Counted from the first letter of the stretch, positions 20,668-25,112 are shown. The stretch: DNA of 64,000 nucleotides from Octopus sinensis (GCF_006345805.1 NC_042998.1:91636001-91700000), one strand, 5' to 3'. Made by a program: numbers and translations. Notes: generated by a model not told the origin, from the sequence alone.

Positions 20668-20894
20668 GTACATCAATGATAAGGAACTCAAAGAAAGTGA
20701 CATTATTCATTTTGATTCTCCAAAGAAAGATGAATATACTCTTACCATTGATAAAGCTAGCCCTGAACTGAAAGGAAAACTGAAAGCTGTTGCAATTAAT
20801 AGGGGAGGAGAAGCTTCAGCTGAAGCCAAGATTGATATTAGAGGCAGAGCACCAGAGTTCATTGAAGTACCTCAGAAATGTACAATTTTGGAAG
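20668..20894 (+). CDS. Exon 24: Ig 3' part plus start of the next Ig (227 nt)
   Basis: tttag|G...GAAG|gtaat; YINDKELKES...AVAINRGGEASAEAKIDIRGRAPEFIEVPQKCTILE. Confidence 0.88.
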
Positions 20895-21352
20895 GTAATC
20901 ATTATCAACATCATTTAATGTCAATGTTTCATGCTGGGAAGGGTAGAACAGTTTGGCAGGATTTGATGGGCTCAAGAACAGTGTCTTCTTTGGCATGGTT
21001 TCTATGGCTGGATGCCTTCCTAATGCCAACTATTTCACAATGTGCACTGGGTGCTTCTTTCATACTACCAGACCTAGTGAGGTCATCATGCATCTTGCAA
21101 GACATAAACCCCGATGCTTGGAGATGAAAGGTAAAAGTATGAAAGAAAGGACCAGAGAAGAACATGTTTCTTGTTGTAGAGAAGTTAGATGGCTGTTTAC
21201 ATATTAGTAGAGAGAAACCTTATTTGTATTTGAAATAAATTTATTGATTGAAAAGAAGAAAAGGCAAATATTTATTCTCATAAATTCAGTTTTATTACAA
21301 CTGTTTCTACTTTACATGTATATTTTATATTCTATAAATTTCTTAATTTAAG

Positions 21353-21638
21353 ATGGTACCACAGAATTCCGTTGCAAGATTGCTGGTGAACCTAAACCAA
21401 CAATTGAGTGGTCTAAGGGAAAATGGATGAAACTTCAAGATGGTGGACGTATTAAAATCTATTATGATGAAAAAACAGGAGAAGAGGTTATGAAGATGGA
21501 AACAACCAAAACTGGAGATGCAGGTACTTACACTGTAACGTTGACCAATGAGCATGGAACAGAATCTGCACCAGCAACTCTTATTGTAACAGACAAGGAA
21601 GAGGAGGAAACAGATTGGAAAGCCGGCTTAAAACACAG
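21353..21638 (+). CDS. Exon 25: KGKW-type Ig domain (MyBP-C C1 / titin I80-like)
   Basis: ttaag|AT...CACAG|gtaaa; GTTEFRCKIAGEPKPTIEWSKGKWMKLQDGGRIKI...NEHGTESAPATLIVTDKEEEETDWKAGLKHR. Confidence 0.9.
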
Positions 21639-21764
21639 GTAAAATTATTGAAGCTGTAAATATTTATTTTTTGCATGTTTTTTTTATAATAGGAAATATA
21701 GCTGCTCTGTACTTGTACATTTACACACATGCCCTCACACACATACATACATGCATATATACAT

Positions 21765-23450
21765 ACATGTATATATATATATATATATATATATATATAT
21801 ATAATATATATATATATACACATATATATATATATATATAATATATATATACACATATATATATATATACACATATATATATATATACATATATATATAT
21901 ATACATATAATATATATATATAATATATATATATATACTATATATATATATATATACATATATATATATATATATATATATATATATATACATATATATA
22001 TATGTACATATATATATGTACATGTATATATGTATATACTATATATACATATATATACATATATATATATATATATACATATATATATATACATATATAT
22101 ATATATATATATATACATATATATACATAAATATACATATATATATATACATATATATACATATATATACATATATATATATATACATATATATATTATA
22201 TACATATATATATATATATATAGTATATATATATATATGTATATATATATATGTATATATATATATATAATAATATATATATATACATATATATATATAT
22301 ATATATATATATACATTATATATATATACATATATATACATAATATATATATATATACATATATATATATATATACATATTATATATATAATATATATAA
22401 TATATATATATATACATGTATTATATATATATATAATTATATATATATATAACATATATATATATATATATATATATACATGTATATATATATATATACA
22501 TGTATATATATATATATATATATATATATATATACATGTATATATATATATATACATGTATATATATATATATAACATATATATATATATACACATATAT
22601 ATATATACATATATTACATATATATATATATATATATTATATTATATTTTATATTTTATTCTATTTCCTTGTCTATTTATATTTACTATATATTTTGTAT
22701 AATGCCTTTACTGATATGTAATGGTGTAATAAAGTATTGATTGGGTATCATCTGTTAGTTGATGTTTTATTGATTTAGGTATGTTTCTCCATTTTCTAAT
22801 TTTGTAGTATATATACATATATATATATATAATATATTATATATATATATAATATATATATATATATATATATATATATATATATATATATATATATATA
22901 TTATATATATACATATATATATAATATATATATATAATATATATATATATATATATATATACATATATATAATATATATAATATATATATATATATATAT
23001 TAGAAATAATACCTGTACATCATCTCCAAACCTTCCAATATATATATATATATATATATATGTATATATACATATATATATATATATATACATATATATA
23101 TATATATATATATATATATACATACATATATATATATATATATATATATATATATATATTATATATATACATATATATATATATATATAATATATATATA
23201 TATATATACATATATATATACTATATATATACATATATATATACATATTATATATATATATAACATATATATACATATATATACATATATATATATATAT
23301 ATACATATATATATACATATATATACATATATATATACATATATATATATACATATATACATATATATATATAATATATATATATACATATATACATATA
23401 TATACATATATATATATATATATATATATATATATATATATATATATATA
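21765..23450. repeat. Two long compound (TA)n/(TACA) microsatellite tracts (about 21765-22640 and 22810-23450)
   Basis: Visible directly; source of all the Y/I-rich spurious ORFs. Confidence 0.97.
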
Positions 23451-23526
23451 GGGAGAGTTTTCAAAAAAATAAAAGACGAAGACAGGTAGTGTACAAAACA
23501 AACAGATGTACAGGAATAGAAAAAGT

Positions 23527-23562
23527 CTTTTACGTTTCGAGTCTACGCTCTTCTACAGAAAG
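23527..23562 (-). ncRNA. Degenerate minimal hammerhead-like motif in a repeat next to a (TA)n tract
   Basis: Minus strand: CTTT-CTGTAGA-A-GAGC-GTAG-ACTC-GAAAC-GT-A-AAAG; core deviates from CUGANGA at A6 and stem II has one mismatch. Confidence 0.4.
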
Positions 23563-23784
23563 GGACACAGAAAAAACAAGGAGAGAAAAAAATGTGTGTA
23601 GTGGCTAATGATCTATCATGGCGACTGCCAGACAGAAGGGTCATATATGAGAAGTATTGGTATCCAGAAGACCCAAGATGGCAGGTAACGCTATGTAAGT
23701 GCTATGGAAGGACCATAGTTAAACTCTTGGTTCAATAGTAATACGAATGAGGAGCTTAATGCGGGTCTTGTGTGAGCATGTATA

Positions 23785-24123
23785 TGTTAAATAAAATGAG
23801 ACAACAAAACCAAGGCTCTGTGGAATTTTACACAGGACTTTCTATACAGCACTTTCCTTGGATAATGGAATTGCAACTGTAACATCCTACATATATTTTT
23901 ACTTTTATTCTCTTATTTCCCTTTATACTTCCTATATCCATCCTTTTCCAAAATAACTCCTTATATTGAACTGTATTACTTCCCTCGAGCTCACTCTCTC
24001 ATATTGTCTCTCATAAAGGGATATCCATAATATCCCAGAAACAGATGTAAGATTACCTTTCTCTTTATAAATATCCTATAAATTCCACACAGCCTTGGCT
24101 TTGTTGTCTCATTTTATTTAACA
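23785..24123. repeat. Inverted repeat with arms of about 44 bp (MITE-like)
   Basis: tgttaaataaaatgagacaacaaaaccaaggctctgtggaattt (23785-23828) versus reverse complement of 24080-24123, with 2 mismatches. Confidence 0.75.
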
Positions 24124-24296
24124 CACATACACACACGCACACATTTATTTATTTACATAATCATTAAAAAATTCAAAATTATTACTGAATCTGAGAAAAA
24201 TATTTATAGAATTAAATTTGATGATCATAGAAACTAACTAGCATAGAGAATAAATATTCCATAAAAATTTTTAATATTAAAACCTGTTTTATATAG

Positions 24297-24462
24297 GGAG
24301 CAAGAAGAACGAGAACTTGAAGAAGACGCTGGCTTTGATATTAACCTTCGTAAGGTTGAACTGGAAGAACAAGAGGTGACTCTAACTGATACCACCAAAC
24401 GTACTATGGAAATTGAAGCAGATGAAGTAACATATGATCTAAAGAAGAGAGATATGCCTGAA
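24297..24462 (+). CDS. Exon 26: acidic non-Ig linker (166 nt, phase 2-0)
   Basis: atatag|G...CCTGAA|gtaag; EQEERELEEDAGFDINLRKVELEEQEVTLTDTTKRTMEIEADEVTYDLKKRDMPE; not in the ORF track but bridges the phases exactly. Confidence 0.85.
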
Positions 24463-24917
24463 GTAAGTAGAATTTTTATATATCTTTGTGAGTGAAGATT
24501 GTATTTTATTTATTGAAGGATATCTATTTACATTTTTTGTTAGATGTGCTAACTCTAAAAATCAGTATATAAATGAAGCATGTTTAATACTACATACATA
24601 GTTAAATTCTATAATATCAAAGTGATATTTTTTACTAGAGAAATGCAAAGTATAAAATATCATTAAAGTTAAGCCCATTAAAATATTATCTTTGATATTT
24701 AATATTTTAAACTGACCATGTCGTTATTGAAGAGTAAATTAGCTCTTGAAATTAATACTGAAATGAATATTTAGTTTGTGGATGTTATTTTTTGTTTTAT
24801 AATAACAAGATGTTAATATTATAATTAAGGTTTTTATATTTCAATTTTAAGATTTAAATTTTAAATACATATTTTTACGTTTTTATTTTCATTATGTTTA
24901 TGTATTTTTGTTTTTAG

Positions 24918-25112
24918 TTGGATGAATTCAAAGACAAAACATATGATCTTCAAAAACGTGAAGACATTGAGTTAGCTAAAGTAGATAAGAAACCTGGAAA
25001 GGATGAAAAAGAGAAAGATAAAAAGAAACCTGAAGACAAATATGCAAAGAAACCCAAAGAAAAAGATACTGCTACCCTAGAAGATGGTGGTTTCAAGACT
25101 GTCAAGAAAACG
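24918..25112 (+). CDS. Exon 27: K/D/E-rich PEVK-like linker (195 nt, phase 0-0)
   Basis: ttttag|TTG...AAAACG|gtgag; LDEFKDKTYDLQKREDIELAKVDKKPGKDEKEKDKKKPEDKYAKKPKEK... Confidence 0.87.

Follow-up and report, generated by a model that had tools for sequence, protein, structure and literature searches.

The question raised by this locus is whether an immunoglobulin (Ig) domain with a KGKW motif, followed by a charged non-Ig insertion, ties its host gene to titin and MyBP-C and the insertion to the N2A region of titin. The DNA studied, called the window throughout, is a stretch of 64,000 nucleotides from Octopus sinensis (GCF_006345805.1, NC_042998.1:91636001-91700000), and the element lies between positions 20,668 and 25,112. 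A first-pass annotation had proposed a gene of the titin/MyBP-C lineage with an N2A-like signalling hub, rather than twitchin. The reading preferred here, to which a probability of roughly 60% can be given, is that the element would be one three-part module of a giant protein of the titin/twitchin superfamily, in which an Ig domain is joined to a DFRXXL-type helix for docking on thin filaments and to a flexible charged tether. The anatomy, conservation and homology of this module are observed, and its function is what we infer by analogy.

The + strand of the window carries a single very large gene of Ig and FN3 exons, whose start and end both lie outside the 64 kb. The domain order was read with Ig and FN3 profile hidden Markov models (HMMs) built from the window's own domains, and the exon boundaries were re-read from the sequence; all splice sites are AG/GT and the phases are consistent. 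The features of the module and its neighbours are the following.

20405 to 20508, + strand: exon with the first half of Ig 15 (..KKPSFVKKPVDKLVPENGSVTFDCKVSGQPSPTVT-W), from sequence reading and our own Ig HMM; the 5' boundary is approximate
20668 to 20845, + strand: first part of exon A, the second half of Ig 15 (YINDKELKES..AEAKIDIRG), from the sequence and our own HMM
20846 to 20894, + strand: second part of exon A, the N-terminal strand(s) of the KGKW Ig (RAPEFIEVPQKCTILE and the G of a split GAT codon), from the sequence
21353 to 21594, + strand: Ig part of exon B, the remainder of the I80/C1-type I-set Ig (Pfam I-set, E 1e-24; AlphaFold predicted local distance difference test, pLDDT, >90)
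21595 to 21638, + strand: tail of exon B, KEEEETDWKAGLKH(R), conserved in orthologues and within a predicted helix (residues 99-122)
21613 to 21638, completed by 24297, + strand: motif 1, D[FWL][RK]xxLK[KH]R, DFRXXL-like (DWKAGLKHR), from alignment with the twitchin/projectin tail and the start of UN2A
21639 to 24296, + strand: intron of 2.66 kb, mostly filled by a 1.7-kb (AT)n-type microsatellite (21755-23450), with repeat debris besides, from the sequence
24297 to 24462, + strand: linker exon C, with an acidic spacer (EQEERELEED), motif 2 (FDINLRKVE, 24334-24360) and then divergent charged sequence, from the sequence
24918 to 25112, + strand: linker exon D, a PEVK-like spacer rich in K, E, D and P and free of serine (..KKPGKDEKEKDKKKPEDKYAKKPKEKD..), from the sequence; predicted disordered
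25944 to 26202, + strand: first distal Ig (WKWVRPLEDTEVKERECATFECEL..), from our own HMM; 66% identical in the orthologous locus L001
27216 to 45016, + strand: ten further short single-exon Ig domains, starting near 27216, 28500, 34711, 35926, 36433, 38037, 38974, 43224, 44353 and 44732, from our own HMM; splice sites compatible with phase 1-1

The donor of the first-half exon of Ig 15 leaves TG, and the G at 20668 completes the codon. Exon A (20668-20894) ends in GAAG before a donor GT at 20895-20896, and the GAT codon split there is split in L001 as well. Exon B (21353-21638) encodes ..EWSKGKWMKLQDGGR..LIVTDKEEEETDWKAGLKH(R), has WSKGKW at 21409-21426 and ends in ..CAC AG before its gt; the peptide and coordinates quoted in the first-pass annotation were found on the + strand just as given there. 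No coding potential was found in the intron at 21639-24296. The spliced product reads RAPEFIEVPQKCTILEDGTTEFRCKIAGEPKPTIEWSKGKWMKLQDGGRIKIYYDEKTGEEVMKMETTKTGDAGTYTVTLTNEHGTESAPATLIVTD, then a linker of 135 residues (KEEEETDWKAGLKHREQEERELEEDAGFDINLRKVELEE.. to ..GGFKTVKKT), then WKWVRPLEDTEVKERECATFECEL.. The linker between the two Ig domains is 56% charged, with 33 K+R, 43 D+E and no serine; the earlier figure of about 120 residues had been counted from after KHR, and 135 is the full stretch between the domains.

The relatives of the KGKW Ig were sought among 3,880 Ig domains cut from obscurin, unc-89, titin-like, twitchin-like and MLCK-like proteins, with 20 Ig domains of the window and human C1, all with their tails removed. 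The KGKW motif occurs in 59 of the 3,880, namely 38 fish titin I80 domains, 19 orthologues of exon B, exon B itself and C1 of human cMyBP-C; a single further domain, from amphioxus, has KGKF. After its own orthologues the window Ig is best matched by the amphioxus Ig that precedes a tri-helix bundle (THB) (67 bits), by Ig 1370-1464 of a Ptychodera twitchin-like protein (62 bits), by an Ig of protein P0087 (61 bits) and by fish I80 (55-61 bits). When fish titin I80 is the query, the window Ig is the first match from outside fish, at 59 bits and right behind 39 fish I80 domains. It ranks first with the amphioxus KGKF Ig as query (68 bits) and fourth with the Ptychodera Ig. The top matches of human C1 are I80 domains and the Ptychodera Ig, at 27-36 bits. 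Pfam classes the KGKW Ig as an ordinary I-set domain (E 1e-24).

The identity of the fish domains is given by what follows them. Fish titin fragments, one of them (Polypterus) annotated TITIN, read VKWMKGKW and then ..EGDLRSKLKK..IDIVELLKNVDPKEYEKYARMYGITDYRGLLQAIE, and the sequence after KGKW matches the published mouse UN2A (PMC11687307) as well as the 41-residue titin UN2A chain 7nip, the latter at 62.6 bits. Human cMyBP-C C1 carries WFKGKW (..VVKWFKGKWVDL..), and the tri-helix bundle of MyBP-C aligns to UN2A at 26 bits. The W-x-KGKW motif, given in the first-pass annotation as a marker of titin I80 and MyBP-C C1, does hold in these sequences, and the non-Ig insertions it had placed after both domains are both present and have the tri-helix bundle in common. 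Homology of the window Ig to titin I80 is supported at the level of the domain sequence. The KGKW Ig, titin I80, the amphioxus Ig before the bundle and the Ig after the PEVK-like gap of projectin and twitchin-like proteins would, on sequence grounds, constitute one orthology group, which C1 joins through I80.

The tail motif was not used in the Ig comparisons, and it co-occurs with this type of Ig. An exhaustive profile search gave matches that extend through the tail in, among others, Anopheles 'twitchin isoform X7', the 'twitchin-like' proteins of Ptychodera flava and Anneissia, two proteins from acanthocephalans, and MLCK-like proteins from amphioxus, a starfish and a crinoid. No gap is needed to align the window tail TDWKAGLKHREQEERELEEDAGFDINLRKVE with those of Anopheles, Ptychodera (MDFRSLLKHREFKRRSSKDEGPDWGKLKHIE) and the crinoid (LDFRSLLKHREVERRESKVDTPDWGELKHVE); the projectin-type tail starts DFRAMLKKR, and more than 60 insect fragments have a nearly invariant version of it. 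From motif 1 to motif 2 the alignment is ungapped across mollusc-type, hemichordate, crinoid and insect sequences, with a spacing of 22-23 residues (22 to FDINLRKVE in the window). The start of mouse UN2A, GDLRAMLKKTPALKKGSGEEEEIDIMELLKNV, shares this motif, and there too the spacing is 23 residues; TDWKAGLKHR of the window, with its spacer, aligns over the first ~27 residues with this GDLRAMLKK-type motif. When the Ig was removed and the invertebrate tails were compared by hhalign with an alignment of fish and mouse UN2A, the score was 23.4 (P 1.5e-4). The scores of 100 column shuffles were 8.8 +/- 2.0 with a maximum of 15.6, none of them reaching 23.4, which lies about 7 standard deviations (SD) above them. 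Because motif and spacing are shared and this score exceeds those of the shuffles, the first third of UN2A is homologous to the twitchin/projectin insertion and to the window tail; the homology does not extend to the remainder of UN2A.

An AlphaFold model built on a 71-sequence alignment gives pLDDT >90 for the Ig, a straight helix at residues 99-122 (EEEETDWKAGLKHREQEERELEED, pLDDT 79-89) and values below 50 from residue 128. A single-sequence model of the whole linker, poor overall (mean pLDDT 45), predicts the same helix and no bundle.

The conservation of the module was followed in 19 orthologous fragments from other assemblies, which carry the module exon with 44-79% identity. WSKGKW is invariant in 18 of them, the 19th (P0336) being cut off upstream of the motif. 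The tail D-W-(K/M/L)-x-x-L-(K/Q)-(H/K) closes the exon in all fragments that reach it; the K position of motif 1 varies in three orthologues (DWM.., DWL..). The orthologous locus L001 (ENA ERZ26859061, contig ctg17850, 10730-11525) has the same exon structure as the window, and its tail (VDWKSQLKHREVQRAAKEEEAAWDVKLKHVE) also aligns with the twitchin-type tails without gaps. Identity between the two loci is 63% in the Ig, 51% without gaps in the tail as far as motif 2, 28% in the rest of the linker and 66% in the next Ig; linker exon D is poorly conserved. Since the identity falls from 51% before the end of motif 2 to 28% beyond it, strong sequence constraint applies to only about 35 residues of the insertion, the remainder keeping a charged PEVK-like composition and not its sequence. 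The genome of L001 is more compact and has 42% G+C, and its linker is P/S-rich (SPSPEVKPKPASPE, RSRPTAAVPPAKEEEE), with five serines versus none in the window. The spacer evolves freely, in sequence as in potential phosphorylation sites. Two linker repeats, TYDLKKRDMPE and TYDLQKREDIE, were considered as extra copies of the motif and dropped, as they are not conserved in L001.

The reading preferred here has three parts. A KGKW-type I-set Ig is prolonged, straight out of its last strand, by a rigid and predictedly helical stretch of about 24 residues, with the basic-amphipathic DWKAGLKHR, an acidic spacer and, 22 residues on, FDINLRKVE. About 95 residues of fast-evolving, charged, serine-free and disordered PEVK-like spacer complete it. 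The helix would most likely dock on F-actin or the thin filament, allowing a giant protein associated with the thick filament to tether or drag on actin, and the spacer would link the proximal to the distal Ig springs as a compliant tether. The action would be constitutive, that of neither a phospho-switch nor a MARP-binding hub, because there is no tri-helix bundle and no PKA site, the corresponding place being occupied by EQEERELEE, without serine.

A docking helix is favoured because the motif belongs to the DFRXXL class, because MLCK-like proteins have arrays of it after a related Ig, and because of the analogies with the MyBP-C M-domain and Mytilus D1. DFRXXL is the F-actin-binding motif of MLCK (PMC2196421), and the first DFRxxL in the MLCK-like proteins of echinoderms and amphioxus stands immediately after a related Ig. 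Both MLCK and the window have a short D-aromatic-basic-x-x-L sequence in a basic stretch beside Ig domains, whereas the window has a single DWKAGL and a degenerate FDINLRK in place of a tandem array of at least three. A further protein, P0012 (UniParc UPI000228F5A2, 3173 residues), has repeated units of Ig, 'VDFRKQLKT' tail and E/P/V-rich linker, and several of its Ig domains are among the top matches of the window Ig. It was through homology with twitchin that the conserved actin-binding sequence in the M-domain of MyBP-C was recognised (PMC7721898), and Mytilus twitchin has a PKA site, D1 (Ser-1075), between Ig7 and Ig8 (PMC12040844); the M-domain and the N-terminal (D1) region of Mytilus twitchin both bind thin filaments. 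Compared with Ig7-D1-Ig8 of Mytilus, the window linker has no PKA site. The order of WxKGKW Ig, non-Ig insertion and Ig is common to the window and to C1-M-C2 of MyBP-C. They differ in that direct similarity of the window Ig to C1 amounts to 18 bits, that the window has neither tri-helix bundle nor RRxS sites, and that its host is a giant protein, of which the window alone encodes more than 40 domains, versus a protein of about 10-11 domains that ends Ig-Fn-Ig.

Several observations weigh against this reading. The Ig set was assembled from matches to the module itself and is therefore a biased sample; word-indexed protein searches gave single-exon fragments and no full-length mollusc protein, and no search of any kind returned a protein of more than about 7,750 residues. 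With C1 as query the window ranks 49th of 3,880, and with the window as query C1 ranks 1725th (18 bits) and the projectin Ig 128th. Since the direct match of window and C1 ranks so low while C1 matches I80, their link is transitive, through I80; the affinity to I80/C1 proposed at first is supported for I80, whose best non-vertebrate match is the window Ig (59 bits), and is weak where C1 is concerned. Searches of PDB sequences with the domain or with a 6-sequence profile return generic I-set domains (Robo Ig3, titin I65-70, LAR-type phosphatases), the closest MyBP-C stretch being C10 and not C1, and Foldseek with the AlphaFold model is also generic (myotilin Ig2, MLCK IgCAM3, titin M10). Taken by themselves, these searches would have told against the first-pass proposal. 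A per-domain phylogeny was part of the original proposal, and a BLOSUM62 neighbour-joining tree of 177 Ig domains does place all 18 candidates in one clade free of decoys; the bootstrap of that clade is 20/200 (3/200 with Kimura distances), and it is absent from the Kimura point tree. The tree is consistent with the grouping and is no proof of it. The function, moreover, is argued entirely from analogy. The motif of the window is DWKxxL and not DFRxxL, in one clear and one degenerate copy versus three or more in MLCK, and its linker probably equals the D1 linker of Mytilus by position only.

The main rival to a docking module is a purely passive element, in which the helix does no more than cap or stiffen the Ig, and the charged linker acts, without a partner, as an entropic spring of PEVK-like type. 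A fast-evolving spacer, 56% charged and predicted disordered, is what such a spring would look like, PEVK-like EEKPKEKKPE spacers occur elsewhere in the gene, and a binding partner is so far indicated by analogy only. We consider this explanation unlikely, given that motif 1, the spacing of 22-23 residues and motif 2 are kept from insects to hemichordates, and motif 1 as far as vertebrate titin, which is deeper than a spring needs, and that related motifs bind actin in MLCK and MyBP-C. It is scarcely credible that the resemblance is due to chance, with a generic I-set Ig that happens to have KGKW beside an ordinary low-complexity linker. The ranking of Robo, titin I65-70 and receptor phosphatases in PDB searches and of myotilin and MLCK Ig in Foldseek, like the low bootstraps, would agree with chance, but KGKW is exclusive to this group among the 3,880 domains, the best matches are reciprocal, the tail motif goes with the Ig type and the tail-only hhalign score stands ~7 SD above its shuffles.

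The N2A-like signalling hub is also not supported. A true hub would have its insertion folded as a bundle like that of UN2A or the M-motif, recruiting MARP/CARP-type ankyrin-repeat proteins, calpain or S100. The layout of titin N2A (I80-UN2A-I81-I83) is indeed approached in that the KGKW-type Ig domains are reciprocal best matches across phyla, D[LFW][RK]xxLK[KH] comes directly after the Ig, a second hydrophobic/basic motif follows 22-23 residues on (IDIMELLKNV in titin, FDINLRKVE in the window), the first ~27 residues of the insertion align with the UN2A start, and the module is flanked on either side by an Ig tandem in a giant elastic protein. The bundle, the PKEYEKYARMYGITDFRGLLQAFE part of titin, is what the window lacks. 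Pfam THB (PF18362), which scores 49 bits with mouse UN2A and 51 bits with the amphioxus module, has no match at E<=10 in the window linker and none in any twitchin-type linker, and our own THB profile of 23 sequences found nothing in all six-frame open reading frames (ORFs) of the window, introns included (best E 1.7). Modelling, suggested in the first-pass annotation as a check for a helical bundle, gave one 24-residue helix followed by disorder, and what remains of the insertion is a charged spacer, disordered and past motif 2 only 28% identical in L001. No RRxS/PKA site and no serine are present in the 135 residues, and no I81-like domain was found after the linker. The first distal Ig has its best matches in fish titin I82 (49 bits), which would suit a hub; from I82, vertebrate obscurin Ig domains come first and the window Ig is 14th, and the identification with I82 was rejected for failing this reciprocal test. 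A hub is therefore considered very unlikely, as is an N2A-type signalosome without the bundle, and binding of MARP, calpain-3 or S100A1 by the window linker cannot be assumed. In an amphioxus hybrid 'obscurin-like protein 1 isoform X6' (P0105, XP_078700411.1), residues 306-436 comprise the KGKF Ig and, directly after it, a Pfam tri-helix bundle (EEEVLKILEKTDPKDYERVALMYGITDFRNLLKHV), followed by a long Ig tandem. This is a module of the N2A/MyBP-C type in a cephalochordate, and its Ig is the closest non-orthologous relative of the window Ig.

The opposition of titin to twitchin is answered by the distribution of the module. The same Ig and tail are found at the same place in the domain order of Anopheles 'twitchin isoform X7', which has the projectin layout, and of the Ptychodera and crinoid 'twitchin-like' proteins, and the module cannot argue against twitchin because twitchin/projectin proteins carry it too. 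The phrase 'rather than twitchin' has consequently been abandoned, and since the module occurs in both lineages the choice between them is a false one. The layout is collinear (Ig 1114-1207 in Anopheles 'twitchin X7', 886-983 in the crinoid, 1370-1464 in Ptychodera). In twitchin-type proteins the module Ig is the first after a PEVK-like gap and is followed by 5-6 short Ig before the FN3 region; the Anopheles projectin reads I8, gap, I6, (FFI)n, kinase, I5. The window agrees with the N-terminal insertion of twitchin/projectin in its succession of proximal Ig with PEVK-like spacers, Ig with tail, short Ig and FN3/Ig. It departs from it in having KGKW where they have KG(A/I/G)x, DWK versus DFR, the acidic EQEERELEE versus RRSS/RRES of the hemichordate and the crinoid, a linker of 135 residues versus about 40-60, 11 downstream Ig domains versus 5-6, and no Fn-Fn-Ig core in the window. 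The PKA consensus RRSS/RRES lies exactly between motifs 1 and 2 in P0039 (Ptychodera, ~1479-1490) and P0047 (crinoid, ~1005-1016). The same place is acidic or neutral in the window (EQEERELEE) and in L001 (EVQRAAKEEE), which would fit the loss or absence of a catch-type phospho-regulation.

That the gene is nonetheless an orthologue of titin (TTN), with a separate canonical twitchin gene elsewhere, is doubtful. KGKW is kept as in I80 and not as in the insect, hemichordate and crinoid twitchin-like proteins (WYKGA.., FFKGI..), and the FN3 exons match amphioxus titin-like A-band proteins about as well as twitchin-like ones. At least 27 Ig domains precede the first FN3 in the window, and the whole of Mytilus twitchin has 24. 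The FN3/Ig order, FFF II FFF II FFFFF, speaks for titin in not being Fn-Fn-Ig and against it in not being a titin super-repeat. Further against titin, it is the Ptychodera and crinoid 'twitchin-like' proteins that give the best collinear matches over whole proteins, the module is itself characteristic of twitchin/projectin, the window contains no kinase, Z-disc or M-band part, and the names in the databases are automatic annotations. The repeating Fn-Fn-Ig core was not seen within the 64 kb and may lie beyond. A tblastn comparison of the FN3 and Ig exons with named proteins was tried as a discriminator and discarded, as it did not separate titin-like from twitchin-like.

The gene around the module has 31 Ig and 11 FN3 domains in the window. 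The proximal tandem has 16 Ig domains within 100-21594, many of them split across two exons, and the KGKW Ig is the 16th, with the non-Ig stretch next. The distal tandem after the linker consists of 11 single-exon Ig domains (25944-45018), confirming the short class described in the first-pass annotation. The ten exons after the first are of 264-285 bp with splice sites compatible with phase 1-1, an arrangement by which exons can be skipped in titin-like I-band regions. From 45785 to 63733 (+) the domains are ordered FFF II FFF II FFFFF, which is neither the Fn-Fn-Ig core of twitchin/projectin nor the A-band super-repeat of titin. The last five FN3 exons follow one another with no Ig exon detected among them, and a run of 15 FN3 domains is likewise present in the Ptychodera 'twitchin-like' protein, which is flagged as low quality.

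Two single exons of the proximal region, at 1098-2270 and 12062-12925 (+), contain several near-identical tandem Ig copies joined by PEVK-like EEKPKEKKPEQKKPE spacers (the EEKPKEKKPE type), and such copies suggest that the proximal Ig region has recently undergone internal duplication. Within the distal tandem, at 40568-41560 (+), lies a candidate exon of 993 bp and phase 1-1. It has a polypyrimidine tract and CAG acceptor and a GTAATC donor, and stands in an open frame of 395 codons, very unlikely in such AT-rich DNA. It encodes 331 residues of polar unique sequence with four GQSAEY repeats at the end, and the product has no Pfam match. The DNA of the window is AT-rich and eukaryotic (G+C 26-36%, with a single stretch of 16%), and its introns are filled by dispersed repeats and extended (AT)n arrays. 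One dispersed repeat has copies in several introns beside CA/TA arrays, with recurring pseudo-ORFs such as ..IHSQGFGWPEAIVEDTCPRCHTV.., and minus-strand ORF fragments of it are found near 4.4-4.7, 5.2-5.5, 16.9-17.2, 18.3-18.5 and 55.8-56.1 kb.

As to its origin, the module is an old shared building block to judge from these comparisons, and no proof that the gene is titin. The window element is a variant, without bundle and without phosphosite, of the modules in which a regulatory linker stands between Ig domains (titin N2A, MyBP-C C1-M-C2, twitchin Ig7-D1-Ig8). The tri-helix bundle is present in amphioxus and vertebrates and absent in the hemichordate, crinoid, insect and window sequences compared. 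A tentative explanation, short of an even chance, is that the KGKW Ig and the DFRXXL-type helix are the ancestral core of titin N2A and MyBP-C C1-M, predating the split of protostomes and deuterostomes, and that the bundle is a chordate addition, which may have grown around motif 2, as helix 1, and a second DFRXXL copy, as helix 3 (ITDFRGLLQ). The kettin/sallimus-type 'titin-like' fragments examined did not show the module.

If this ancestral core is real, it would tie the N2A region of the vertebrate titin I-band to the twitchin/projectin lineage. The link of titin I80 and the start of UN2A to the twitchin/projectin insertion is possibly new; no paper making it was found in a literature search that covered the muscle literature only in part, and a prior mention is possible. 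The invertebrate counterpart of vertebrate titin is an open matter for which three scenarios stand (Hanashima et al. 2025, PMC12198301), and the module offers a discrete, position-specific character that can be scored across phyla more easily than weak kinase or Ig trees. Two medically important regions, titin N2A and the M-domain of MyBP-C, may both derive from an older unit of Ig and actin-docking helix to which the bundle was added later, and the conserved helix can be studied in the gene of the window, which would represent a naturally minimal form lacking both bundle and phosphorylation sites.

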